Source: Lepidodermella squamata
Taxonomy: Eukaryota > Animalia > Gastrotricha
DNA length: 64,000 nucleotides
Assembly: GCA_047495785.1 (NCBI GenBank)
Contig: JBLDXI010000054.1
Span: 3,658,001-3,722,000, forward strand
Direction: 5' to 3'
Part shown: positions 15,830 to 62,579 of the stretch, piece after piece
Numbering within the stretch: position 1 is the stretch's first letter
Layout: every line of letters starts with the position of its first letter
Program-made: the position numbers and the translations under genes
Notes under the pieces: model-generated
The model's input: the letters and a program-made list of their open reading frames with translations, nothing else
Database searches by the model: none
Told to the model about the DNA's origin: nothing

Positions 15830-18800
15830 TTTCGCGATCTTTTTCTTGCAATCAACTCGAGCTAAAACTATCTCTCAAACGCATCTCTCACGGCGATTAC
15901 GACCGCGGTAAAATCGCCGGAAAAAATCTGGGTGAAAAAGTCTTATTTACTATATGCGTGATAGTAAGAACGTCGCCGGCCGGCGTTGTTTAGAAAATCG
16001 TCGCCGATCAATTTTTGAAGAGGCCAAAGTGGCCAGGTACGCGCGCGAGACAAACAGCCGTATGTATTACGGAAATTATTTGTACTATATATTATTAATA
16101 AAAAGTGATTTTGCGAGCCCTACCAATAATTTCGTCATCGTCTTCGTCGTCCATCTCATCGAAGCGACGAAACACTATAACATCACCGCATCAATCGATT
16201 TCTCCCAGGCATCAACAGTAAAATCGCTTCTCGGCGGCCAAATAACAACATTTTCTCCGTAGGAGGGGGCAGTCGATCGAAAAATAGCAACAAAAAATGG
16301 CAAACAGGCCGAGTATGTTAATGAAAGCGAAAAAACGGTCTTTAGTAGCTTTTAATTAAAAGGAGTCACACCCAGCGTTAAATGGCGACTAAACTCTATT
16401 GACCAGTGCAGTGGTAAAAAAAACGTACCTGATTTTTATTGAGCTTAGTAGGAGAGATGCTTTCTCCGACGTCGTCGCGTCAATTTGAAGGGCGCAAAGG
16501 CGATGTCATCGGCCGCCTTTCACGCTCAACCGGTAAACATTCGCGCATATCATACGCGAAATTTCCAGAATAAAAATGAGGTAAAAGCCTAAAGACTGGA
16601 AGAATTTTTATTGCATCGAATGGCTAGTAATTTCACTTTTGGTGCGAAGGAAGAGATTGTAGGTCAAATGCGGCATTTTATTAATGAGAACATACTAACG
16701 CATGAGCTATGCGGTTATTATTATAGTCATTATTATTACTATCGAAACGGGTTATAAGTGAATGGTGTTTATCGGTTTATCGGAAGGTATGTAACCGAAA
16801 CTTCTACTCTATCATTATTTTTCGTTTTTTTTCGTTGAATGCTGAAGGCTGAAAATAACTAAAGAAAATATTAATGGAATTACGAGAGAAGATGCGCAAT
16901 AAGAAAGATCCCTTTTTTCTTTCCCTGCCGACTGTTACCTTTCATACGATCTAAACTAGCAGGCCTCACTAAACAATTAATTTATTTTTTACGAATAATT
17001 TGGATAGTTCAAGAATTAGCGCATTAGGGTCAATATAAAAAATCCATTTTATCAGACTAGCCAGAGCTAAACCTATAACCAGGTGTCTTAAAGAGCTCCG
17101 AACAGCCATTTTGTTAGCAATTTTATATACTCCGATCCCTTATCAGGGCCTCCGACCCCCGAAAAGTTTCAATTTGTTTCGTCAATAAAGAAAACATGGT
17201 TCTGCTCCGTCCAAAGGTATATCTAGCCTTAACGGGGTGTGGTAGCCGCTGAATGGTGTAAAAATGGACCTTAAAAACAGCCGAATAGCCCGACATTTCG
17301 GGGGTGGGTTGAGGATGGCTAGATAAACTAAACTTTTGGCTCCGTGTAATATCTATAGTGAATGGATAGAGTTTCCTAAATAATGATAACCAGAAAATTG
17401 AAATTAACAGAATGGCGTCGCTGTTTACGTTGGTTTCTTACAAAAAATATGTTTTAATATCGACCGGTAGTTGTTTCTGTTTACGGCGTGATGGAAAGTC
17501 TGGTGTATTTGGATGAAAAGCTTTCGACTGTTTGGAACCAAAAGTTGTATTTTTGTGGTAACAAATGCTAAAAACGGTGTGTTACAAGTGGCGTTTCACG
17601 CTGTTTGCGCTTCGGAAGCATCGAGAATCGAGCCGCGATTTCTGATGAAAAATAGCCAGGCATGGGGCCAATCTTTGATGGTTTATCTGCTACAAGCTCT
17701 GGCCACAACACGCCTGCCAATGATCGGCGGCGGTGAGCTAGTTTAACCGCGAGTAATAACGCCAATTTTGTAACAATTATATACGTTACTCGTTGTTCAT
17801 CTGCGCGGCGTAGAGCGAGTAGCCAGCTCGCTATTTGTTACCAGGCATGTTTTCTAAACAATCACCGCTCATGATCATCGGAGCGGCTGCTGCGGAATGA
17901 GAGAGGCGGAATTTCCCAGCAAGGTACCTGTATGTAGCGTAAAAAGCCACGTAGTATAAACAGCGTGGTCGGAAGCAACTTTTCACGCCGTGCCGATATA
18001 TTTGTTGCAATGCCCGGCGCAAGACCCCGTGTCCAGACTCGAGGCATATCGATGAACCGCCAAGAGGCGGTGATCAATCAGCGGCATCACGGGACGCCCA
18101 CCTGGTCTGGTCAGTTTCGAGGAGGCCAGCAATGGAATTCAACTGCTGACATTCTTTCGCCTTCGTAAATTACTAAAATTAGCTCTATTTTTTTCTTAAT
18201 TTTTTCTTCTCGGTAACGCATTTGTACCGCATAGTGGTGAAAATAGCAAAACCACGCAGATACAGGATATCCCTATCGCACTTGCGGCGCCAAATATAAT
18301 CGACAAAGAATTTGAATAAAATAAATTGAGGCAATTTTGTAATTTTGCAATAAATGCATTCCTAGCAAATGATTGACTGCTCTAAATATTTTCAGCTGTT
18401 AATAAAAATCGATAGTTCGAGGCTTATATGATATCATCTGTATTTGGCTATAGATAGCAAAACAATATGTCATGTTATTCCGGTGTTTTAGCGATCTTCA
18501 TGGTGCTGCCTGATTAGTTTGCCAACAAGTATAGCGATGAGTCACTGTTTTTTTTCTGGTCATTTTTTTGCGTGTTGCGTGACTTCATGATCAGCCAATA
18601 ATCGTTGGAACCGCGGCGCAACGTGGCGCGCTGTTTCACGCCTGATGATGGCTGGCAATCGATTGGAAAGAAAGCGCTGACAATTCACCTGGTGGGATGA
18701 TGCAATTATTACAGAATCAGAATGGCAAATACTTTTAAGCTGTGACGTTTTTTTGGCGCAATTTTTTCAGCTAATATAATATACTTTTTTGTTATAGCTG

Positions 18801-48155: not shown

Positions 48156-48998
48156 ATGGCTCGTGTTGCAGTTGTAACTGGATCAAACAAAGGCATCGGG
48201 TTTGAAGTCGTCAAGCAGCTTTGCGAAAAGAATCCGTCATGGATCGTATATCTGACATCTCGCGATACTGGGCGCGGTCAAGAAGCCATCAAAGAATTGA
48301 AGTCCAAGGGATTAAACCCGCATTTCCACCAGCTAGATCAAGATTCTGTTGAGAGTATTCACAAATTCGCCGACTTCCTGAAGAAAGAGCATGGTGGACT
48401 AGATGTATTGGTTAACAACGCCGCCATTGCTTACAAAGGAGATTCACCTGCTCCTTTCAACGAGCAAGCCAAGGTCACCAATGCTACAAACTACACCGGG
48501 CTAATCAACGTTTGCAAAGCTTTATTCCCGCTGCTGCGCGATCACGCCCGAGTTGTTAATGTGTCATCTCGAGTTGGCCATATGATTTTCCCGAAATTAT
48601 CGCCCGCACTACAGGACGCTTGGAAAAAATGTGCAACTATTGAAGACGTGGATAAATTGGTCAAGCAATTTGTGGACTTGGCCCAGGAGAACAAGCATGA
48701 AGCGGCTGGTTGGGTCAGTTCAGCATACGGCACGTCAAAAGTCGGAGTAACCGTCGCCACTTACATTCAACAACGCGAATTCGACGCCGATAAATCGCGC
48801 AAGGATATTGTTATCAATGCTTGCTGCCCTGGTTATGTTAAAACTGACATGAGCTCCCACAAGGGGCACAAGGATGTGGCTGATGGTGCCGACACGCTGG
48901 TTTATTTGGCGATGCTGCCTGAAAATATCGAATCACCGCGCGGTCAGTTCGTCAACGAGCGTGTCATCAATAACCTTTTCGACGGTAAAGCATTCTAA
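48156..48998 (+). CDS. Carbonyl reductase (CBR1-like) NADPH-dependent SDR, copy 1
   Basis: TGSNKGIG, DVLVNNAA, VNVSS, YGTSK, CCPGYVKTDM; intronless. Confidence 0.95.
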   Translation: MARVAVVTGSNKGIGFEVVKQLCEKNPSWIVYLTSRDTGRGQEAIKELKSKGLNPHFHQLDQDSVESIHKFADFLKKEHGGLDVLVNNAAIAYKGDSPAPFNEQAKVTNATNYTGLINVCKALFPLLRDHARVVNVSSRVGHMIFPKLSPALQDAWKKCATIEDVDKLVKQFVDLAQENKHEAAGWVSSAYGTSKVGVTVATYIQQREFDADKSRKDIVINACCPGYVKTDMSSHKGHKDVADGADTLVYLAMLPENIESPRGQFVNERVINNLFDGKAF

Positions 48999-49127
48999 CT
49001 TGCAAAATAATGACAATGGCTGTGACATTGAATAATGACAATACCTTGCCTGTGATTATTTTTCGTAATTGTATCTATTCACCATGTCATAATACACTTA
49101 ATTTCACATAGAAATATTTTTTTTGTA

Positions 49128-49227
49128 ATGCAAAGAGTTCAAATCGTGGACTTGGTTTCGCTATCGTCAAATGATTGTGTCAAATTGAGGCGGACTTTGT
49201 GGTTTACTTGACTGCTAGGAATTAATC
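49128..49227 (+). pseudogene. 5' fragment of the third CBR-like gene, left by a tandem duplication
   Basis: Matches 50453-50568 with an internal deletion and a tta>tga change. Confidence 0.85.
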
Positions 49228-49465
49228 GATTTTTCGGAGACGGAGCAAACAATTTGACCGACTTACAGGAGATTCAGCCAGTTAGAATCAAGTCGGTCAA
49301 ATTTTTCTAACCAGATCCTTTTAAACCGCAACCTAAAAGCAGTAGGTAGTAGTAAGCAACTTTAACTATGGTTCCATTTTGCAATATTTTTTCGCCATTC
49401 TTTCGTTCATTTATTGATATTTCACGAGTCGCCATTTTTTGTCACCTAGGCTTATATAGAATAAA

Positions 49466-50308
49466 ATGGCTCGTGTTGCAGTTGTTACTGGATCAAACAA
49501 AGGCATCGGGTTTGAAGTCGTCAAGCAGCTTTGCGAAAAGAATCCTTCGTGGATCGTATACCTTACGTCTCGCGATACTGGGCGCGGTCAAGAAGCCATC
49601 AAAGTATTGAAGTCTAAGGGTTTGAACCCACATTTCCACCAGCTAGATCAAGATTCTGTTGAGAGTATTCACAAATTCGCCGACTTCCTGAAGAAAGAGC
49701 ACGGTGGACTGGATGTATTGGTTAACAACGCCGCCATGTCTTACAAAGCAGATTCGCCGGCTCCGTTCAACGAGCAAGCCATGGTTACCAATGCCACAAA
49801 CTACACTGGGCTAATCAACGTTTGCAAAGCTTTATTTCCGCTGCTACGCGACCACGCCCGAGTTGTTAATGTTTCATCTCGAGCTGGCCATTGGGTTTAC
49901 CAAAAAATATCACCCGCCCTTCAGGATGCTTGGAAAAAATGTGCAACTATCGAAGACGTGGATAAATTGGTCAAGCAATTTGTTGACTTGACCCAGGAGA
50001 ACAAGCATGAAGCGGCAGGTTGGGTCAGTTCGGCGTACGGCACGTCAAAACTCGGCGTAACCATCGCCACTTACATTCAACAACGCGAATTCGACGCTGA
50101 TAAATCGCGCAAGGATATTGTTATCAATGGTTGCTGCCCAGGTCCTGTTAAAACTGACATGAGCTCCCAGAAGGGGGAAAAAGAGGTGGCTGATGGAGCC
50201 GACACGCTGGTTTACCTTGCGATGCTGCCTGAAAATATCGAGTCACCGCGGGGCCAGTTTGTCAACGAGCGTGTCATCAATAATATTTTCGATGGTAAAG
50301 TATTCTAA
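49466..50308 (+). CDS. Carbonyl reductase (CBR1-like) SDR, copy 2 (recent duplicate of copy 1)
   Basis: Near-identical to 48156-48998; YGTSK intact. Confidence 0.95.
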   Translation: MARVAVVTGSNKGIGFEVVKQLCEKNPSWIVYLTSRDTGRGQEAIKVLKSKGLNPHFHQLDQDSVESIHKFADFLKKEHGGLDVLVNNAAMSYKADSPAPFNEQAMVTNATNYTGLINVCKALFPLLRDHARVVNVSSRAGHWVYQKISPALQDAWKKCATIEDVDKLVKQFVDLTQENKHEAAGWVSSAYGTSKLGVTIATYIQQREFDADKSRKDIVINGCCPGPVKTDMSSQKGEKEVADGADTLVYLAMLPENIESPRGQFVNERVINNIFDGKVF

Positions 50309-50452
50309 TTTGCGAAATAATGACAACGGTTGTGACATTTAATGATGACAATACTGTGCCTGTGATTATTTTTTTTTAACTTTTTGTAATTTCGTAATCT
50401 CTCCACCATGTCATAATACACCAAATCTCGCTTAGAATTATATTTTGTTGTA

Positions 50453-51280
50453 ATGCAAAGAGTTGCTGTTGTAACTGGTTCAAATCGTGGACTTGGTTTC
50501 GCTATCGTCAAATTATTGTGTCGAAGTGATGCGGACTTGGTGGTTTATTTGACTGCTAGAAATGAATCACAGGGATTAGATGCAATTGAGAGTTTGAAAA
50601 AACTAGGCCTAACTCCGAGATTTCATCAACTGGATATCACAAATCGGTCAAGTGTTGAAAATTTACGCGATTTCCTCCTCAAGGAGCACGGTGGTTTGGA
50701 TTTGTTAGTCAATAATGCTGGAATAGCTTTCAAAGTTGATTCGCCGGTGCCATTTAGCGAGCAAGCCGAAGTCACGATAGGGACCAATTATTTTGCAACG
50801 CTTGGCGTATGCGACGTTTTATTTCCGATTTTGCGTGATCACGCGCGTGTTGTGACGATTTCGAGCACGGAAGGCCACGATTCATTAGCAAAATGCTCGC
50901 AGGACATTCAAAACGCGTTCAAGTCATGCGAGAGTGTTGCGCAAGTCGATGAGCTGATGCGGAAATTCATCGAACTGACAAAAACTGGACAGCATGTTGC
51001 GAACGGCTGGTGTAACTCGGCGTACGGAGCGGCTCACATCGGCTTAACAACGGCTACTTACATTCTGCAGCGCTTAATCGACGCGGATGAGTCACGTCGT
51101 GATGTAATTGTCAATTCGTGTTGCCCGGGTTACTTGAAAACTGATATGTCTAGCTTCAAGGGCGATAAAACGCCCGAGGAAGGCGCGGATACCCCGGTTT
51201 ATCTTGCTACACTGCCGAAAAATTGTGACAATCCAAAAGGTTGCTTTGTTACTGAGAGAAAAATTTTGCCGTTATTTTGA
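50453..51280 (+). CDS. Carbonyl reductase-like SDR, divergent copy 3 (YxxxK changed to YGAAH)
   Basis: TGSNRGLG, NNAG, CCPGYLKTDM; catalytic Lys replaced by His. Confidence 0.93.
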   Translation: MQRVAVVTGSNRGLGFAIVKLLCRSDADLVVYLTARNESQGLDAIESLKKLGLTPRFHQLDITNRSSVENLRDFLLKEHGGLDLLVNNAGIAFKVDSPVPFSEQAEVTIGTNYFATLGVCDVLFPILRDHARVVTISSTEGHDSLAKCSQDIQNAFKSCESVAQVDELMRKFIELTKTGQHVANGWCNSAYGAAHIGLTTATYILQRLIDADESRRDVIVNSCCPGYLKTDMSSFKGDKTPEEGADTPVYLATLPKNCDNPKGCFVTERKILPLF

Positions 51281-51400
51281 TTATTGTTAAAATATGATAA
51301 ATAAATATTCAATCAAAAATTCTGATTAATTAAAATATTGCAAAATGATTTGATTGTTTTATTAATTTATAGTCATTTTTTACGATAATTGTTTTTTTCA

Positions 51401-51756
51401 ATGGGTTGCTGCTTTGGATCTCAAGCGAACGATGAGCCGGCCCAACCTAGTCCGGTAATTTTTAACTTTTTTTCTGTCGAATATTCTTGTTTGAAATTCG
51501 GCGATTTCAGGAAACACGGCGACGTCTCGTGCTAGAAGCTACTGAAAGGCGGAGACAAGAACAGCAGTCGAAAGGTTTTCAGGATCCTGGAGCGCTAGCG
51601 CGAGCTCAGAAAAAGGCTGATGAAATGGAGAGATTAGAGCGGGAACGCGTATTATCTGGCAATCGCGACGGAGATGGCCTCAAGGTAAGATTTTTTACAT
51701 ATAATTTGATCGTAATTACAAATTTATTTATTTTTTTGCAGTGGACTGTCGGATAA
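51401..51756 (+). CDS. SVIP: Small VCP/p97-interacting protein
   Basis: Exons 51401-51454, 51511-51684 and 51742-51756. MGCC acylation start, VIM-like RRRLVLEATERR, C-terminal GLKWTVG. Confidence 0.88.
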
Positions 51757-52407: not shown

Positions 52408-54301
52408 CGCCCATTCGAACGTGTCTTTTCTTGGCAATTAAAGCATAGTTCTACTCAATATTAATGGCCGAAGAAGACGATCGGCTGTGATTCAATTGAG
52501 ATTTCTGCGCACTTCGACAGCGTCGTCTCAATGCCTAATTATTTCCAGCCTGGTAAAGGCTTTGATAGCGACTTTTGACATTTTCGTCACCGCTCATTAC
52601 AATGTTGCGCCCTCACTTCACCCCTGTATGGAAACCGAACTCGTATATTCAAAGAGTAGTCAGAATAATCGAATAAGGGAATGAAACCAGAGATCACATA
52701 CCTCAATCGCAAGCAAATTTTGCGCGATAATTTTGTCCTCGGCGAAAATTCAAGTTTCGGCATTTCAGCATAGACATACCTTACATAATTTGCACTTAAC
52801 CTGACGCTGCAAGAATCTGTGCTTCGATATTTTTCACAGTACGATTGAATCCTATTGCCATTAGGCCTTAGGTGCCTTTCAGAATAGGGGTGAAATGTCT
52901 GCGTTTCTGCTGCCTATCAAGTCCCATTTAATTCTAGCACACCAAGCGTTTTTTCTCCTAGTTCGAGGGACATCTATTTAGTAATTAAGATGCTTTACGA
53001 TAAAAGGTTGAGGAATAAGCTTCAAGATACATGATCGGTGGGAAAGAGTGATGAAAACAAGTAAAAACGCCCATTTAATAGCGAGAATTTTTGATCGCAC
53101 GCATTCGACGCAATGACGTCAAAGGTCAAGTTAGGAATTTATGGGCGGTTTTTGTGTCTAAAAATGCTACAAGCAACAAGCTTCAAAATGAATATGGGGT
53201 TCTCGCGCGAAAAATGCAATGGGAAAAAATTTTAGGCGCACCTCGCAAAAGTGCGCACAAGGTGACAAGTGTGTTAATTTTACATTTTTGATGCCTCCAC
53301 AATAATGGCTTATAGCATGAAAAGTACGCATCGGGGATAAAAACGGATTGCACCATGAGATTCCCCATGAAAAACTGCATTAGAAAATGGCGAAAAGTCA
53401 TTTTCGATAAATCAAACCTATCCAACCTTCTTTGCACTCTGGCGAACATTTTACAGAAGTGCGTAACCCACGGTTTTCACTTGTGGCGGCTCATATGTCT
53501 ATTTGAAATAATACACGCTGGCACAATACTTCATTGATTAGATAGCCGCTGTTTTTTCGTCCCAATCATGTATTTTTGCAATTTATCTGTGCCTTTTTGC
53601 TGGGAAATTCGCTTTTCTCGACACCTTGCTCCACGCCTCTGCTGTTATCTTACTTAACATAATATGACGAGCTGTTTAATAAATATTCCAGTATTTGTTT
53701 TTATCTGTTGAATATTTTTAATAAAAATACCTATGATTCATTATCGAGGGTTTAACTTCCCGACCCTGGATCGTGTTTTTATCAATTTCCCAGGTTGCGG
53801 ACGTTCAGATGTAAGATGAATTATAAGCAAACAGCGAGTGTGAGGACAAGTTTTTGCCAACTTGAGTCACTTGAGTTCGGTATCAGTCGAAAACATCGGT
53901 CAGAAACTTGTCACTGTTTGCGCAGGTGCCACATTGCTCATGCTAAACTCGGTTTGATACGCACCGAAAATAAGCGGCGAAGCCACGGTGTAATGAATCA
54001 CCGGTTATCACAACATTGACGTGGCACAAGAGCGGCAAGTGTACATCGTCAAAAGCGCGAGCGGTGAATCACACGCGCTTCCTTTCATATTGCGGCTTCG
54101 CGCTATCGGTTCGCTACGCCATGGTTGCATCATCTTTCGGGAAATTTCCAGAACCTGCGCACACGATATTGCACGGCTTTAAAGCATCGGCATTTATCGC
54201 CCGGCGGCTTTTCATTTATTCATTCGCAACATCTGGTAATTTCGATAACTATCGACATTACCTTAACTGCTCATCATCTCGGCGAGAAATTCGATATATT
54301 T

Positions 54302-54733
54302 ATGCAGCAGGTCAATAGTTCAAGCAAAAAGTCGGTCTCATTCGCTCGCCTTGTCCACGTTCGATACGTCATGTCGAACCCGCGTCATTATCGCAGCAGG
54401 GTGATTGAAGTTGAGAACGATGAGAACGCAAACGTTGAAATTGGCTGTCGACATGACAAATTCGACGAGATAGCAGCAACGAACAAGCCGGTGATCAAAT
54501 ACTCGCGTGACCAGCTGTTGGCGATACGCGACTCTGTGACAAACCTTGAACGTGCTAATCTGGCGACAAGTGCAGCCATTCCACCGGCGATAATTCGATC
54601 GACCGGTGACGCAACGCCGCCACCGGCAAACATCCGATATTCGAGCCGAGAGCTGTTGGCCATCCGGAACAGCAGCTCAAGCAATGGCTGCCTTATCAAC
54701 ATAGCTAGTCTTCCAGCGGCGATACGCAAGTAA
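54302..54733 (+). CDS. Small protein A: RVxF-like PP1 motif plus two eIF4E-binding (YxxxxL-phi) modules, 143 aa
   Basis: KKSVSFARLVHV; KYSRDQLLAIR..IPPAIIR; RYSSRELLAIR..LPAAIRK; AATAAA at about 54944. Confidence 0.8.
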   Translation: MQQVNSSSKKSVSFARLVHVRYVMSNPRHYRSRVIEVENDENANVEIGCRHDKFDEIAATNKPVIKYSRDQLLAIRDSVTNLERANLATSAAIPPAIIRSTGDATPPPANIRYSSRELLAIRNSSSSNGCLINIASLPAAIRK

Positions 54734-55898
54734 ATAATTGCGTGCGTCTCTGTTTACCTCGAGGCCGAAATCGGCTTAACGCCTGGATGAGAAACTTGAA
54801 AAACTTAGCAACGCTGTGATGATCATATCCAGGCGGAACTGATGTAAATAATCGTGCTTTCGCTTATTGTTCTTCTTATACGTGATGACATATTTTTACT
54901 TGCGATCGTGTAAATACGAAAATGAAATGCGAATATGAAAAAAAATAAAGCGGAAAAACCGCAACAGTTTTAAGGTGGTGTTTTTTATTTCAATCCTCTC
55001 ATTAATTTTCGTCGCTTGTCTCCAAATTTAATGCCCAACTGGACGTATAAAAACGATATAACCAGGGTCATACGACGTAATAGCGCGACGCGGCAATTCA
55101 TCAGAGACCAACGTCCTTTCGGCCTTAGAAGTGTTCGGCTATCAAAGTTTTACTGGGCAATGAATAAAGCGGCAGCAGTCGGAACGTGATGTTGGCACGT
55201 ACGCAGGTTTTAGGATCCGCAGGAGTCACGCACGAGTTTTGTCGATCGTTAATTTTTTTTCACATCTCATTATCGTCTTCTTCGTCAATTACCACACGCT
55301 CGACCAGGTCGCTAATTTTTTCGCTAATGGGTGGCGACATATGGGCGGGTTTATTAGTGCCAATTTTTGTTGCAACCGAAGCGAAAGTAAATTTAACGCA
55401 AACAGCTGACGTGAAACGGGTAGGGAGCGGGGAAGATAATAGCTATACTTACTCTAACAACAACAAACAGGCCACACCATCTCGTTAGATAGGCTAAACA
55501 CGCCCAGGTAAGTATATCATATGCAATGGTAGGCGGCTCTTAAATAATGTTATTGACGTTTTCGTGTTTGGCTAACAAAACAACAAATAATGCGCACAGA
55601 AGGTAGAAAACCCATGGCCTAGCCAAGCTTTGGCATCATCATCTAAACACAGCGTGGGCTCAGCAGCGCCACCAACAAGATACCTCTACACAACACAACC
55701 ACGGCGGCACGAATTTCCTATAGCAAACTGTATACTGCGATAGACGCAGGCATGAATAATACGTAGCTGTATATGCAATCAGGCGTAATTTAAAAAGTCT
55801 GACGCACATGAATAATATCGTATAATATGGTGCGAGTACTAACGGCCGGCTGCGTAAACTTATCTGCGACGTATGCAGCAAAACAAAGCTGCACGCTG

Positions 55899-55980
55899 AT
55901 TGGCTGGCGCACTGCCTAGTACTCTAGAATATTCGCCTGCCGCGTATAAAAGCGTGCCAAATGCGCGTACAGTCTCATTC
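55899..55980 (+). promoter_or_regulatory. Pol II core promoter of small protein B
   Basis: Reverse CCAAT (attgg 55899-55903), TATAAAA 55945-55951 and Inr-like TCATTC 55975-55980 at canonical spacing (about -76 and -32). Confidence 0.65.
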
Positions 55981-56166
55981 ACTCTCAAATGCGCTACTAA
56001 ATAATATAACAAAGCGAGCCAAGTTTACGAAACCGTTGTCGTTTCTGCTGAATATTACGTGCTATATATTTCATCGCTTCCTCGGCACCTGTGAAATTTT
56101 TATTTCGACAAACGTGTGATTCATTTCTATTTTTCGTACCTTCAAATACCGTCTAACTCAATCGCC

Positions 56167-56565
56167 ATGGCTTGTTACACGAGGCAGCAACTTGTCGATC
56201 TTCGCAACAAATCGTCGCCCGCCGCCGATTTCGACACCACAGTCATTCCTCAGCAACTTCGCAAAACTCAGCTTCAACCGGTGATTAGTTACTCTCGCCA
56301 GCAGCTGCTGGCAATTCGCGACGCGACACCCGTGGTCGAAGAGCCGTCAACAATTCCCGATGACCTGCGCCGGCCGTCTTCACGCTTCCGATGCGATTCG
56401 AATTGTATGAACGAACAGCAGCACGAGACCAAGAAGATACTCAAGTACACGCGAAACGAGCTTCTCCGATACAAAGCCGCCGCTATGCAGTCGTGTGCCG
56501 CCCAGACTCGCGCTCTCGAAGCGACGGCGCCTGAAGAAATCTACCTCCGCTCGCTCGGTCGTTGA
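56167..56565 (+). CDS. Small protein B: three eIF4E-binding modules, 132 aa
   Basis: gccATGG start; CYTRQQLVDLR..IPQQLRK; SYSRQQLLAIR..IPDDLRR; KYTRNELLRYK..APEEIYLR; AATAAA at about 56723. Confidence 0.82.
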   Translation: MACYTRQQLVDLRNKSSPAADFDTTVIPQQLRKTQLQPVISYSRQQLLAIRDATPVVEEPSTIPDDLRRPSSRFRCDSNCMNEQQHETKKILKYTRNELLRYKAAAMQSCAAQTRALEATAPEEIYLRSLGR

Positions 56566-58793
56566 TTCGTGTTAATTCGCCTCAATGCAATGCAATTCTG
56601 CGAGTTCAGATGCTTCAAGTCATCATTGTCATTACTATTCGTGTTTTTTTCTCGGTCCAAAACTGAAAAATCGCTTCTCTTCGTTGATAACAATATTATT
56701 ATCATAAACACTGCCTCGTTTTAATAAAAACAGAAATCTGATGAGCGGAAAATTCGGTTCTTTTTTAGTTCTCGGTTATAACTGGAAAAAGTGACATGAG
56801 ACCAGACGATTATACCTCTTTCTATCATCTTGTCTTCGAATTTCGAAAATTCGACATGAAGATCTATAATTTTTATCTGCCATTTTGTATGTCTAGTACA
56901 TGTGCAAATTGGCTTATTGTTATATTGAGTTGTTGAGAAGCAATAAAAATTGACGATCAGTTTGATGAATCATTTGTTCTTTTTTCTTCACGTTTCGTTG
57001 ATTAATAGTTTCATTAGTGGCGCGTGTGTTTGACACTAGTGATTCGGCGGCGGCCCAGTGACATAAGCGCGATGATGAAAGGCCGGTGTCGATATATTAC
57101 GCCAGCCGTCCATCTGTTGCTGCTGCCTTTATTAGCAGCGCGCACAGCAAAACGTCCAACGGTCGGCGAGGAAAACATTTAGCGCAGGCCGGGTCAACGG
57201 CGGGTCGGCGAGCGGCGCGCCACGTAAGACGTTGCGTCAAAATATTATAAAAAGGCGCAAATCACGTATTGGGTGACTGCCGCTTTTATTGCCCACGGCT
57301 GCTGAGCTGATGATGAATTGATGTGTCAGGCAGGCAGGCAGGCAGGCGATTAAAGCCGCCCCGTAATAACGCGCAATATAATTACATTATTATTTATTCG
57401 ATTCATTTTGCATCGCCTAATCTGCTCTGTTCAAGTGTAGGCTGTGACACACGCCAGCCGCGAGCTAGTCCGATAATAGCGGCTAATAATAGGTAATAAT
57501 TATCATCAACCGCAAAACACACCTGGCACTTGCCTGCGCTTGACCGATCAAATTAATTAAAAGTGAGTTCGGGAAAACATCGCATTCGCGGAATTTTACA
57601 ATTAAGTTGGAGCATCTCGTAATTAAATAAAGAAATTCCCACCTGTCCTACCACCACCTTCCATCTCGGTGCAAGACAACAAAAATATTGCGGCGTAGTA
57701 GTATACACATAAACGCAGACGTCACGGGACTTGGCTAAGGTTTTTTGGATTGTTTTCACTCTATAAAAAATGCCACGCCAGGATCGCTAACCACGTGGTA
57801 TGAATCACGAGACCTCGTTTCGCACTACTCGATTTTTTATAGATTATTCTATTTTTTTTGCGCTGCGAAAGTATGTCTCTGTAGTGCGAATACAATACCA
57901 TTAAGATAATACCGAGGCGCGGCACATTTATTTCCCATCGCGCTGGCTGCTGGTCTGGATGCCGCAGTTTTTTATTATCGGGCCAATGAGCGCGTAATGT
58001 ATTGCTATTAATATTATCATTGCGTGCTTTGATGCATAAAAAACCACACAAAAACATCACTCGTTTTTTTCTCTCACGTATATGATATATACTGCTGTGG
58101 AACTTTTGCTACCCAAGTACTGACGTAATTTATAATTCCCGTTGATAGTTCTTGCCGTGGAGTGCATTTATTTTGCCATCACCACCATGAAATATGCTAA
58201 AAAAATGAGCACAAACAACTCACGTTATCGCGTTAGTTTTTTTCACCTCTACTGAAATAAACCACCGTTGCCAAAAGTGCCTTGTTGTTTTCCTGCTTTC
58301 ATGCAGCAGGGTGGGGTGCAAAAGGTTATAGAGGGCATCCACGCGGCGTAATAGGCAACAGAACATAGCCATAATTTACCGATTCACTTATTTCACATTG
58401 AAGTGTATAGAGTATATAACTCAGTTTTTTCTCGCTGTGTATAATTTTTTCTCGCTTTTCATCACCGCAAAAAGGGAAATTGTGCGGGGTCTAATATATT
58501 ATATGACGCAGGGGCGCTAGAGGAGAGTTGATCCTGGATTGAATGAAAAAATCGAAGCTGTTCATTCACGCGTAATTACTACTTGTGTGGCTTTCTCTCT
58601 TTCTCTCGCTTCATCATCATAATCATCATCGTCGCAAACAAATCCATTTTGAATTTCTTATGATTTCTCTTTTTTTATAAATAGATGAAATAAAGCCTCG
58701 TTTTTTGTACAATACTACGTACAGCCAGTCAGTCAGCAATTCTTCGTGATATTTTTTTAAATTTTGGTACTACTTTCTATATTCAAACAAACA

Positions 58794-59309
58794 ATGGCTG
58801 AATCGCGAGGCAATCGAGCTAATACTGATAATATGGCGGTAAAAACCAGCGCCACGCCTGCAATCTCGATCCAGTGTCGACCGCGGCGTTATTCTCGCGG
58901 TCAGCTGGTGGACATTCGCAACTCGACATCGTCGACCATCAGCTGTGCTAGTTCTTTCGACGATAGCGATTGCGCCATCGCTAACAACGTGTCTTCCTCA
59001 TCCGCAATGGTTCTCAAAATTCCGCTGGCCCTTCGCCGGACCAACTTGCTGTCGTCGTCGTCGAGCGCCGGAGCTGACGATAGTTGTTTCTCGTCGGGTG
59101 CTAGCAGTCCGAGGCGCCAGTATTCACGCGATGAATTGGTCACCCTGCGCAAGGGCGAAAGCTTGAGCGCTGCGAGCAGTCCGAAAAACGACCGCCAATT
59201 CCTGCGTTCGAACAGCAACAACAACAACAACTGCATCGATGACGATGGCAGCGAGCAACAGCGCCGCCTGTTGGCTGTCATTCCACCTGAAATTCGCCGC
59301 GCTCTGTGA
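58794..59309 (+). CDS. Small protein C: two eIF4E-binding modules with Ser-rich linkers, 171 aa
   Basis: acaATGG start; RYSRGQLVDIR..IPLALRR; QYSRDELVTLR..IPPEIRR. Confidence 0.8.
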   Translation: MAESRGNRANTDNMAVKTSATPAISIQCRPRRYSRGQLVDIRNSTSSTISCASSFDDSDCAIANNVSSSSAMVLKIPLALRRTNLLSSSSSAGADDSCFSSGASSPRRQYSRDELVTLRKGESLSAASSPKNDRQFLRSNSNNNNNCIDDDGSEQQRRLLAVIPPEIRRAL

Positions 59310-61308: not shown

Positions 61309-62579
61309 ATGAACAACCAAATGACAAACGGTAACAACACCAACGGCGTGGCCTGTGACGGTTTCACGATAAAACTCGAAGGCAAAACGAGTGCAACGAT
61401 GACACCGAGGCAGCATCTACTTTCGATAATGCAATCTCGAACGTTATCGGAATGTCTGTACATCTGCGCGGAACGGGGCATTGCCAACCATGTCAGAAAA
61501 ACCGAGTCGGTCAGCGCCGCGGAACTGGCGAAGCGTCTCGGCTACAACGAAGGCAATCTGCGAAGGTTCATGTCTTATTTAGCCAGCCATGGCATTTTCC
61601 GCGAGCTTCAAAACGGCGTTTTCATTGGCACCGATTTGTCGGACGCGATGCGAGACGACGCCCCGGACAGTTGTGCAAAAGGCCTGCGATGGGCCGGCTG
61701 TGAGCCAATGACGAAAGCTCTGTACCAAATGGAACACTCGCTTCGAACCGGCCAAGAAGCGTTCAGCGTTGCAAATGGCGCGCCAATGTATGACTTTCTA
61801 TCGGCTAACCCTGGCTACGAGACCTTGTTCGACCAAGCTATGCCAGCTTATCACGAATTGATGGTAAAACACTTGACTACCCGTTACGATTTCAACGGCC
61901 ATCCTAGAATTGTCGAGCTCGCTGGCGGCCGTGGGCAGTTGGCGAAACACATTTTGCAACGATTTCCCAGCGTCGCTAGCCTGACAATGATCGAGCGTGA
62001 ATCTGTTGTTAGAAACATCTTGCCTGAATTAATCACCGATCCTGCTTTCAACGCTCGATTCAAAGCTGTTTCCGGCGATATTTTCCAGCCTATTAGTGTA
62101 ATTTTATTATTATTTTTTTGTAAAAAATGACGAAACAAATTAAGGCGGAATTTTTTAATTTTCGGAAATTTGAAAAATTTGAATTTGAATTTTTTAAATT
62201 TTCTGTTGAATTTTGTTTTTTTTAGGCGGACGGTGATTTGTACGTTGTTCTCAATACGATGCACAATTTCAGCGACGAACAAGTTGCGCAAATTCTCGCC
62301 AATTTGCGAGTCGCGTTGCAGCGCAATACAAACGGCCGGCAGTGTAAATTGCTCATCGTCGAGTTCGACACTTATTGCTATGAAGCAAACGAGCCGGCGA
62401 ACCTGGCTCGATGCATCGATCTGCTGATGATGTACGGCTTTGGCGGCAAACAACGCAACGAAGACGCGTGGCGCACACTCCTCGCCGCTGCTGGCTTGCA
62501 GCTGGTCGACGCCACTAATGGCATAATTCGTCTGCCGCCCATGTTCACCGCCTATGAGTGCAAGCTACTCGCGAATTGA
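61309..62579 (+). CDS. Class II SAM-dependent O-methyltransferase (ASMT / Methyltransf_2 type with winged-helix dimerisation domain)
   Basis: SAAELAKRLG..LRRFMSYLASHGIF; VELAGGRG; SGDIFQPI; MHNFSDE; GGKQRN. One phase-0 intron 62098-62225. Confidence 0.92.

Follow-up and report, generated by a model that had tools for sequence, protein, structure and literature searches.

A cluster of three small genes, here called A, B and C, lies on the forward strand of a 64,000-nucleotide stretch of the Lepidodermella squamata genome (contig JBLDXI010000054.1, positions 3,658,001 to 3,722,000; this whole stretch is referred to as the window, and coordinates are given within it). We consider it rather likely that their products are stress-inducible, multi-site competitive inhibitors of eIF4E's interaction with eIF4G. 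Gene A (54302..54733, + strand) encodes 143 aa with 2 intact modules, gene B (56167..56565, + strand) encodes 132 aa with 3 modules, an RFRCDSNC..H block and an SLGR end, and gene C (58794..59309, + strand) encodes 171 aa with 2 modules; each module consists of a candidate eIF4E-binding helix followed by a second, Pro-containing element. Such proteins would belong to a known kind, the bipartite eIF4E-binding proteins, and what appears to be new is the presence of several bipartite regions in a single small chain, combined with heat-shock promoters. No description of proteins with tandem bipartite eIF4E-binding regions, or of 4E-BP-like genes driven by heat-shock factor (HSF), was found in the literature. 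An earlier note on this DNA had said that its proposal would fall if an already described multi-motif family covered these genes; none was found there, and the members of the family are nameless.

A gene cluster built from repeated bipartite modules

The strict pattern Y[ST][RS].[QE]L[LV]..[RK] has 7 matches in the 127,996 six-frame residues of the window, compared with 0.011 expected from residue composition. All 7 are on the + strand and inside the open reading frames (ORFs) of A (54500, 54638), B (56176, 56290, 56446) and C (58890, 59121), with 0 elsewhere in the window, and shuffled versions of the three proteins yield close to none (~0). Every strict motif is followed, 21–53 residues from its Tyr, by a second element of the form [ILA]-P-x-x-[IL]-(x)-R. 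In order along the + strand, the pattern matches are module A1 (54500..54598; YSRDQLLAIR ... IPPAIIR), module A2 (54638..54730; YSSRELLAIR ... LPAAIRK), which has Ser and not Arg at +2, module B1 (56176..56265; YTRQQLVDLR ... IPQQLRK), module B2 (56290..56373; YSRQQLLAIR ... IPDDLRR), in which the distance from Tyr to second motif is 21 residues, as in the 4E-BP Thor, module B3 (56446..56550; YTRNELLRYK ... APEEIYLR), where orthologues have APEIF.R, module C1 (58890..59039; YSRGQLVDIR ... IPLALRR) and module C2 (59121..59300; YSRDELVTLR ... IPPEIRR).

The earlier note had described three co-oriented, intronless ORFs, 1.4–2.2 kb apart and devoid of long mutual similarity, that together carry seven copies of the module in numbers of 2, 3 and 2, and this description holds. 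All seven copies were recovered at those counts, the intergenic gaps measure 1434 bases (A–B) and 2229 bases (B–C), BLASTP similarity among A, B and C is confined to the modules, and cDNA contigs run colinear with the genome across each ORF. A minor correction concerns the start of B, which is the ATG at 56167 (MACYTR...), in agreement with the MPYSR... start of its orthologues. Within A, the stretch HYRSRVIEVEND ... NVEIGCR (residues 29–60, 54386–54480) resembles a decayed third module and is the counterpart of the first module in P0007, a three-module A-like protein from another species.

The modules resemble both parts of eIF4E-binding regions

The extended canonical 4E-binding consensus is Y-x-R/K-x-x-L-hydrophobic-x-x-R/K/Q, the R/K residues at +2 and +9 are required for eIF4G displacement, and the non-canonical motifs, which are hydrophobic, lie ~15–30 residues downstream of the canonical ones (PMC4573856). 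The non-canonical motif of Thor comprises P76–P84, including C78, L79 and L80 (PMC4164784); the key contact with the lateral surface comes from L79 and a main-chain contact from R81, and CUP I373/R375 and 4E-T F41/K43 behave as Thor L79/R81 (PMC8558276). In the Thor chain of the eIF4E crystal (4ue8_B), YERAFMKNLRGSPLSQTPPSNVPSCLLRGT, the P-x-x-L-x-R sequence begins 22 residues after the Tyr. The second element of the family follows the Thor register, with P at +0, a hydrophobic residue at +3 and R at +5, and module B2 has the same spacing as well. A combined pattern taken from this literature (Y-x-[RK]-x-x-L-hydrophobic-x-x-[RKQ], followed at a distance of 8–46 residues by P-x-x-hydrophobic-x-[RK]) gives 5 matches in six-frame translations of the window and 6 in those of L004, a metagenome scaffold that carries relatives of all three genes; these matches fall only within family genes.

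A literature search with heptapeptides of the family found YSRDQLL in a phage-display study of eIF4E binders. In that study, the dissociation constants (Kd) for human eIF4E were 77 nM for KKRYSRDQLVAL, ~37 nM for KKRYSRDQLLAL and 580 nM for an eIF4G1 peptide, and the gain in affinity was attributed to a Ser/Thr helix cap at +1, a non-glycine residue at +7, and Gln at +4 together with Val at +6 (PMC3477164). Module A1 (KYSRDQLLAIR) has an eight-residue core, YSRDQLLA, that is identical to KKRYSRDQLLAL, and the family consensus carries every affinity feature of the phage-display peptides. The closeness of a natural helix to a tight binder selected by phage display suggests that evolution reached the same optimum, and because of this near identity the modules could serve as compact, genetically encodable eIF4E inhibitors.

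Features tied to control by mTORC1 are missing. RAIP and TOS motifs, whose absence the earlier note had pointed out, occur in none of the 12 family members compared, and S/T-P sites number 0–3 per family protein and are not conserved between orthologues. Together these absences take away the marks of mTORC1 control without proving independence from mTOR.

Conserved motifs on disordered chains

Conservation was tabulated for 32 modules in 12 family proteins, with the Tyr as position 0. Five further features are, like the Tyr itself (32/32), present throughout: Q or E at +4 (32/32), L or M at +5 (32/32), V, L or I at +6 (32/32), R or K at +9 (32/32), and a second element [ILA]-P-x-x-[ILVF]-x-[RK] that lies 20–53 residues from the Tyr (median ~26) and before the next Tyr motif (32/32). 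R or K is found at +2 in 31/32, S or T at +1 in 29/32, L or I at +8 in 29/32, and N or D at +10 in 18/32. The strict extended consensus describes 30 of the 32 modules, the exceptions being YSSRELLAIR (A2) and YSRQQMLAIK (P0007). The linkers between the module parts vary freely in length and sequence.

AlphaFold2 predicts no fold for these proteins, with a predicted template modelling score (pTM) of 0.17 for B and 0.13 for C. The helices that it places in B, at residues 6–15, 44–53 and 96–106, coincide with all three canonical motifs; in C a helix falls on the second canonical motif only (1/2), and short turns are predicted on the second elements. A, B and C consist of ~70% disorder-promoting residues and contain no Trp. 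Since the motifs are conserved position by position, the linkers drift freely and no fold is predicted, the proteins bear the signature of disordered chains of docking motifs. This signature speaks against the idea that they are generic stress-protective disordered proteins (hydrophilin-like, or like late embryogenesis abundant [LEA] proteins) with no specific partner, their repeats being short amphipathic helices. Heat-shock promoters, high expression, the abundance of disorder-promoting residues and the lack of a predicted fold would all suit such a role, which we nevertheless regard as very improbable, because the invariant Y, R, L, R and P are conserved in a position-specific manner among free linkers, and compositional selection would not leave that pattern.

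Two further observations concern the N-terminus of A. An RVxF-type sequence, KKSVSF, is present at residues 9–14 (54326–54343), its KSVSF (residues 10–14) fitting the PP1-docking form [RK]-x(0,1)-[VI]-x-[FW]; it is unrecognisable in the N-terminal part of P0007, the sole A-like protein available for comparison, where the alignment is uncertain; the N-terminus of P0007 shares a loose S/A-R-L-V/F-H with A.

Family extent and conserved gene order

An exhaustive search of 1.84 billion representative proteins with a profile built from 16 modules returned only eight small relatives (144–192 aa, P0001–P0008) and two giant low-complexity proteins. The eight have no Pfam domain, and the sole name among them is 'hypothetical protein', an outcome that agrees with the lineage-specific family proposed in the earlier note. 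In a word-indexed homologue search orthologues of B were recovered and none of A or C, whose relatives surfaced only through the exhaustive profile search. The accession of the run from which P0004 derives is one that we take to denote a marine plankton metatranscriptome.

Three of the relatives reproduce the cluster. P0007 (A-like, 3 modules), P0005 (B-like, 4 modules) and P0006 (C-like, 2 modules) are adjacent on one strand of L004 and are preceded there by a short-chain dehydrogenase (SDR) gene and an SVIP gene. In the window the corresponding neighbours, assigned by Pfam, occupy 48156..51756 on the + strand and comprise three genes for short-chain dehydrogenases and then SVIP, a gene of two exons (51389–51756), so that the order SDR-SVIP-A-B-C is common to the window and to L004, which comes from another species. 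C and P0006 align from end to end (E 7e-17), and A and P0007 align through the modules only. Judging from the gene order on L004 and from these alignments, the three-gene cluster is old and has been maintained, and to the extent that the profile search reveals it the family is small, lineage-restricted and unnamed.

Transcripts and selection

Transcription was followed in two public runs, X2 and X3, recognised as cDNA by the SMART oligo and the poly(A) tails on their contigs, with X1, a DNA run, for comparison. The cDNA contigs of X2 and X3 cover 54192–54890, 56052–56752 and 58683 to beyond 59600, with almost nothing in between, while X1 coverage of the same stretch is even. Lack of transcription, which the earlier note had listed among the findings that would speak against it, is thus excluded for A, B and C. 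The transcript of gene A (54192..54890, + strand) is represented by X3 contigs 54192–54779 and 54750–54890 and by X2 contig 54323–54871; flanking depth is ~0, and no upstream ATG precedes 54302 in this transcript. That of gene B (56052..56752, + strand) is seen in an X3 contig over this whole interval, with an AATAAA signal at 56723–56728; a SMART oligo is present as well. Poly(A) is added after 56752, where poly(A) loose ends occur in both X2 and X3, the cDNA depth is very high, and the true 5′ end is probably further upstream, near 55975. Poly-T runs before 54842 and 56623, each in a single X2 contig, would represent either antisense polyadenylated RNA or a library priming artefact.

Gene C differs in the way its transcript begins. 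An X2 contig has TGCGAATTTGATTTGTGTCTA before 58683, and the same sequence heads L007 and L008, transcript contigs of a family member from another species; gene C is therefore read as trans-spliced to a spliced leader at the acceptor AG at 58683..58684 (+ strand), which follows a pyrimidine tract. What might pass for a TATA box upstream of C (58672–58684) is more plausibly this acceptor's pyrimidine tract. The spliced leader, which ends in ...AACCATCTGCGAATTTGATTTGTGTCTAAG, occupies positions 1–38 of L007 and 1–23 of L008. In L007 it follows the SMART template-switch bases, so the 5′ end of the leader may be complete there.

Sequence variation bears the marks of constraint on the coding sequences. 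Within the species, gene A has 4 synonymous and 2 non-synonymous variants and gene C has 5 synonymous and 2 non-synonymous variants; motif residues are unaffected in both genes, and neither of the two indels in gene C, of 15 and 3 bases, shifts the reading frame. Between gene B and three orthologues, which are 44–56% identical by BLASTP and 48–64% identical in a MAFFT alignment, the ratio of non-synonymous to synonymous divergence (dN/dS) is 0.22–0.33, with dS saturated (1.3–2.3). The cDNA, poly(A), spliced leader, dN/dS and synteny together rule out the view that A, B and C are not real genes.

Heat-shock elements upstream of A and B

As the mark of an HSF target we took an unbroken run of three or more inverted nGAAn units near the core promoter. 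The sole perfect four-unit heat-shock element (HSE) in the window, TTCggGAAatTTCcaGAA, is located upstream of gene A at 54136..54153 (+ strand); the first of the cDNA contigs begins ~40 bases further on, at 54192. The promoter of gene B (55895..55952, + strand) consists of an inverted CCAAT block, GCTGATTGGCTGG (55895–55907), an HSE-like sequence with one mismatch, CTCtaGAAtaTTC (55922–55934), and TATAAAAG (55945–55952), the HSE-like sequence lying between the other two. The arrangement of CCAAT, HSE and TATA is typical of hsp70-type heat-shock genes.

The 20.5 kb of L004 contain exactly two perfect three-unit HSEs. That of the A-like gene, in a position corresponding to the HSE of A, precedes the start codon by ~120 bases, and that of the B-like gene precedes its start codon by ~255 bases. 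Upstream of the B-like gene on this scaffold the three promoter elements of B recur in unchanged order, here with a perfect HSE, and over ~100 bases the two B promoters show 78% identity although dS of the coding sequences is saturated. Because HSEs are conserved upstream of A and B alike, in the window and on L004, we infer both genes to be targets of HSF. No HSE was found upstream of gene C in either species. The suggestion in the earlier note that the genes may be controlled by transcription thus gains from the conserved HSEs of A and B and does not extend in this form to C.

Apart from these, the window has a single HSE-like site (16553–16570; three perfect units, or four with one mismatch), and the ORF listing shows no recognisable gene within ~1 kb of it. 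Further downstream in the B transcription unit, a CCTGTGA(A/T)TT block recurs in the 5′ untranslated regions (UTRs) of several B orthologues (56080–56125 in the window; also L001, L002 and L008), where UTR conservation is weak overall.

Proposed mechanism and competing readings

Combining these observations, A, B and C would be disordered proteins of 130–190 aa whose conserved content is nearly all tandem bipartite modules, 2–4 and perhaps 5 in number. The helix Y-S/T-R-x-Q/E-L-V/L-x-L/I-R would sit on the dorsal surface of eIF4E, which is the eIF4G site, and the I/L-P-x-x-L/I-x-R/K element, ~20–50 residues later, would reach the lateral hydrophobic pocket in the manner of P-S-C-L-L-R in Thor. 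Occupation of both eIF4E surfaces would result in competition with eIF4G and repression of cap-dependent translation, and with several modules per chain either several eIF4E molecules could be held or one could be rebound with high avidity. Heat-shock-type promoters lie in front of A and B, with an HSE in each and CCAAT and TATA elements in B, and C is trans-spliced to a spliced leader and lacks an HSE. eIF4E binding, repression, multivalency and heat induction are each inferred steps of this scheme. A tentative elaboration, which we think possible though not probable, makes the proteins HSF-switched multivalent traps that seize several eIF4E molecules or cross-link cap-bound messenger ribonucleoprotein particles (mRNPs) into granules. 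If true, heat-shock transcription would be coupled straight to the shutdown of cap-dependent translation, with no need of mTOR or 4E-BP phosphorylation.

Several observations weigh against competitive inhibition of eIF4E. Some modules are only 3–8 residues apart, a spacing that may bar simultaneous occupancy; A2 has Ser at +2, and the second element of B3 has an extra residue. At the promoters, the HSE of gene B in the window contains a mismatch and gene C has no HSE. Pfam searches with A, B and C at E values up to 10 gave noise only (End3, RXLR) and no eIF_4EBP (PF05456). The hidden Markov model (HMM) of the module scores Thor at −1.5 bits, a value equalled or exceeded by 12,321 of 20,000 shuffles, and places human 4E-BP1, too, below the majority of shuffled controls; hhalign of the module against 4E-BP gives 0.6% probability. 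With Pfam, module HMM and hhalign all negative, the apparent link to eIF4E rests on a short linear motif. The designation '4E-BP-like' in the earlier note accordingly fits the proposed mechanism, through motif, register and spacing, and does not fit as membership of PF05456. The view of the family as a demonstrably, internally duplicated 4E-BP was dropped after the negative module HMM and hhalign results, and such a descent is still conceivable. Searches of PDB sequences with B and with the module profile returned chance matches only, and an ESM Atlas feature search for B gave nothing usable.

Also unexplained by the eIF4E model is an invariant RFRC(D/E)S(N/D)CxNE..HExK block of nearly all B-type proteins. 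It occupies residues 73–90 of B (56383–56436), between modules 2 and 3, and is absent from the fragment P0008; its two Cys and single His might coordinate a metal or contact a second partner. The B-type proteins also share an unvarying C-terminus, APEIFxRSLGR.

The module motif, moreover, fits the D-box R-x-x-L-x-x-[ILVM], which raises a different partner altogether: the proteins might be strings of D-boxes (R-x-x-L-x-x-I/L ... N/D) acting as substrates or pseudosubstrates of the anaphase-promoting complex (APC/C), or might dock on some other helix-binding protein, in which case their likeness to 4E-binding motifs would be a coincidence. Most modules agree with the D-box form, the N or D at +10 would complete it in the 18 modules noted above, and the want of statistical homology to 4E-BPs leaves room for another partner. 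We hold this to be quite unlikely. A D-box leaves unexplained why the Tyr is invariant, why +1 is S/T and +4 is Q/E, and why a P-x-x-hydrophobic-x-R element follows; two modules have Lys or Ser in place of the Arg that is essential to a D-box; and D-boxes bind in extended form, in contrast to the helices predicted for the module segments. The overlap is generic, since even human 4E-BP1 fits R-x-x-L-x-x-x-x-N, and any other partner would have to be reconciled with a core identical to a peptide selected on eIF4E.

It is also conceivable, and in our estimate unlikely, that the modules bind 4EHP or a specialised eIF4E paralogue, or that the proteins act as holdases, keeping eIF4E or capped mRNPs safe through stress and letting them go later, with an outcome other than general repression. 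The motif evidence is shared by these roles and by competitive inhibition. P0008 contains YTYHREQLL (residues 51–62), a GIGYF-type Y-x-Y-x4-L-hydrophobic form of the kind used for 4EHP, although this Y-x-Y form is found in one module only, and a protective function would be in keeping with the heat-shock promoters and with the depth of B cDNA. R/K at +2 and +9 together with a lateral motif are, on the other hand, traits of good eIF4G competitors, and the proteins have no other domain to recruit effectors.

Neighbouring features of the window

The short-chain dehydrogenase genes upstream of the cluster form a tandem array of three intronless genes at 48156–51280. Downstream of the cluster, a plant-type O-methyltransferase gene (Methyltransf_2 and a dimerisation domain) is found at 61309–62130. 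An Rfam search of the 64-kb window gave no match.

Comparison with known systems

To our knowledge, no well-studied 4E-BP has more than one eIF4E-binding region, and most of the small ones are controlled by phosphorylation. If A, B and C act as proposed, translation initiation would be controlled by dosage and valency and not by phosphorylation, and the heat-shock promoters on two of the genes suggest a previously undescribed throttling of protein synthesis under stress. The family would then be a natural test case for three questions: whether adjacent sites are filled at once, whether eIF4E-mRNA particles are cross-linked multivalently, and how stress transcription is linked to translational shutdown.

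Thor and 4E-BP1-3 resemble the family in being small and disordered; they combine a canonical helix, in which +2 and +9 are R, with an elbow that starts R-N/D/G-S and a lateral motif. In Thor, V-P-S-C-L-L-R stands 21 residues after the Tyr, in the spacing and register of module B2. The differences are that Thor and 4E-BP1-3 have one site per protein, compared with 2–4 in the family, and that the family is without RAIP, TOS and conserved Ser/Thr-Pro sites. Thor is induced through FOXO, whereas A and B have HSF-type promoters.

CUP, 4E-T, Mextli, yeast p20 and Eap1 resemble the family in their bipartite dorsal and lateral binding and in a lateral motif with a hydrophobic residue followed by R/K two positions on. 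CUP, 4E-T, Mextli and Eap1 are large and have further domains or partners, and each protein of the group has a single eIF4E-binding region, while in A, B and C the whole protein would be a string of such regions. PHAGESOL and VL-PHAGESOL (PMC3477164) have a sequence, Y-S-R-D-Q-L-V/L-A-L, close to the family consensus, with the Ser N-cap, Gln at +4 and Val/Leu at +6; they are synthetic 12-mers selected on human eIF4E and lack a second motif. In promoter layout, A with its four-unit HSE and B with CCAAT, HSE and TATA resemble the hsp70-type genes, and the resemblance is kept in a second species. The products of A and B are, unlike those of hsp70-type genes, not chaperones.

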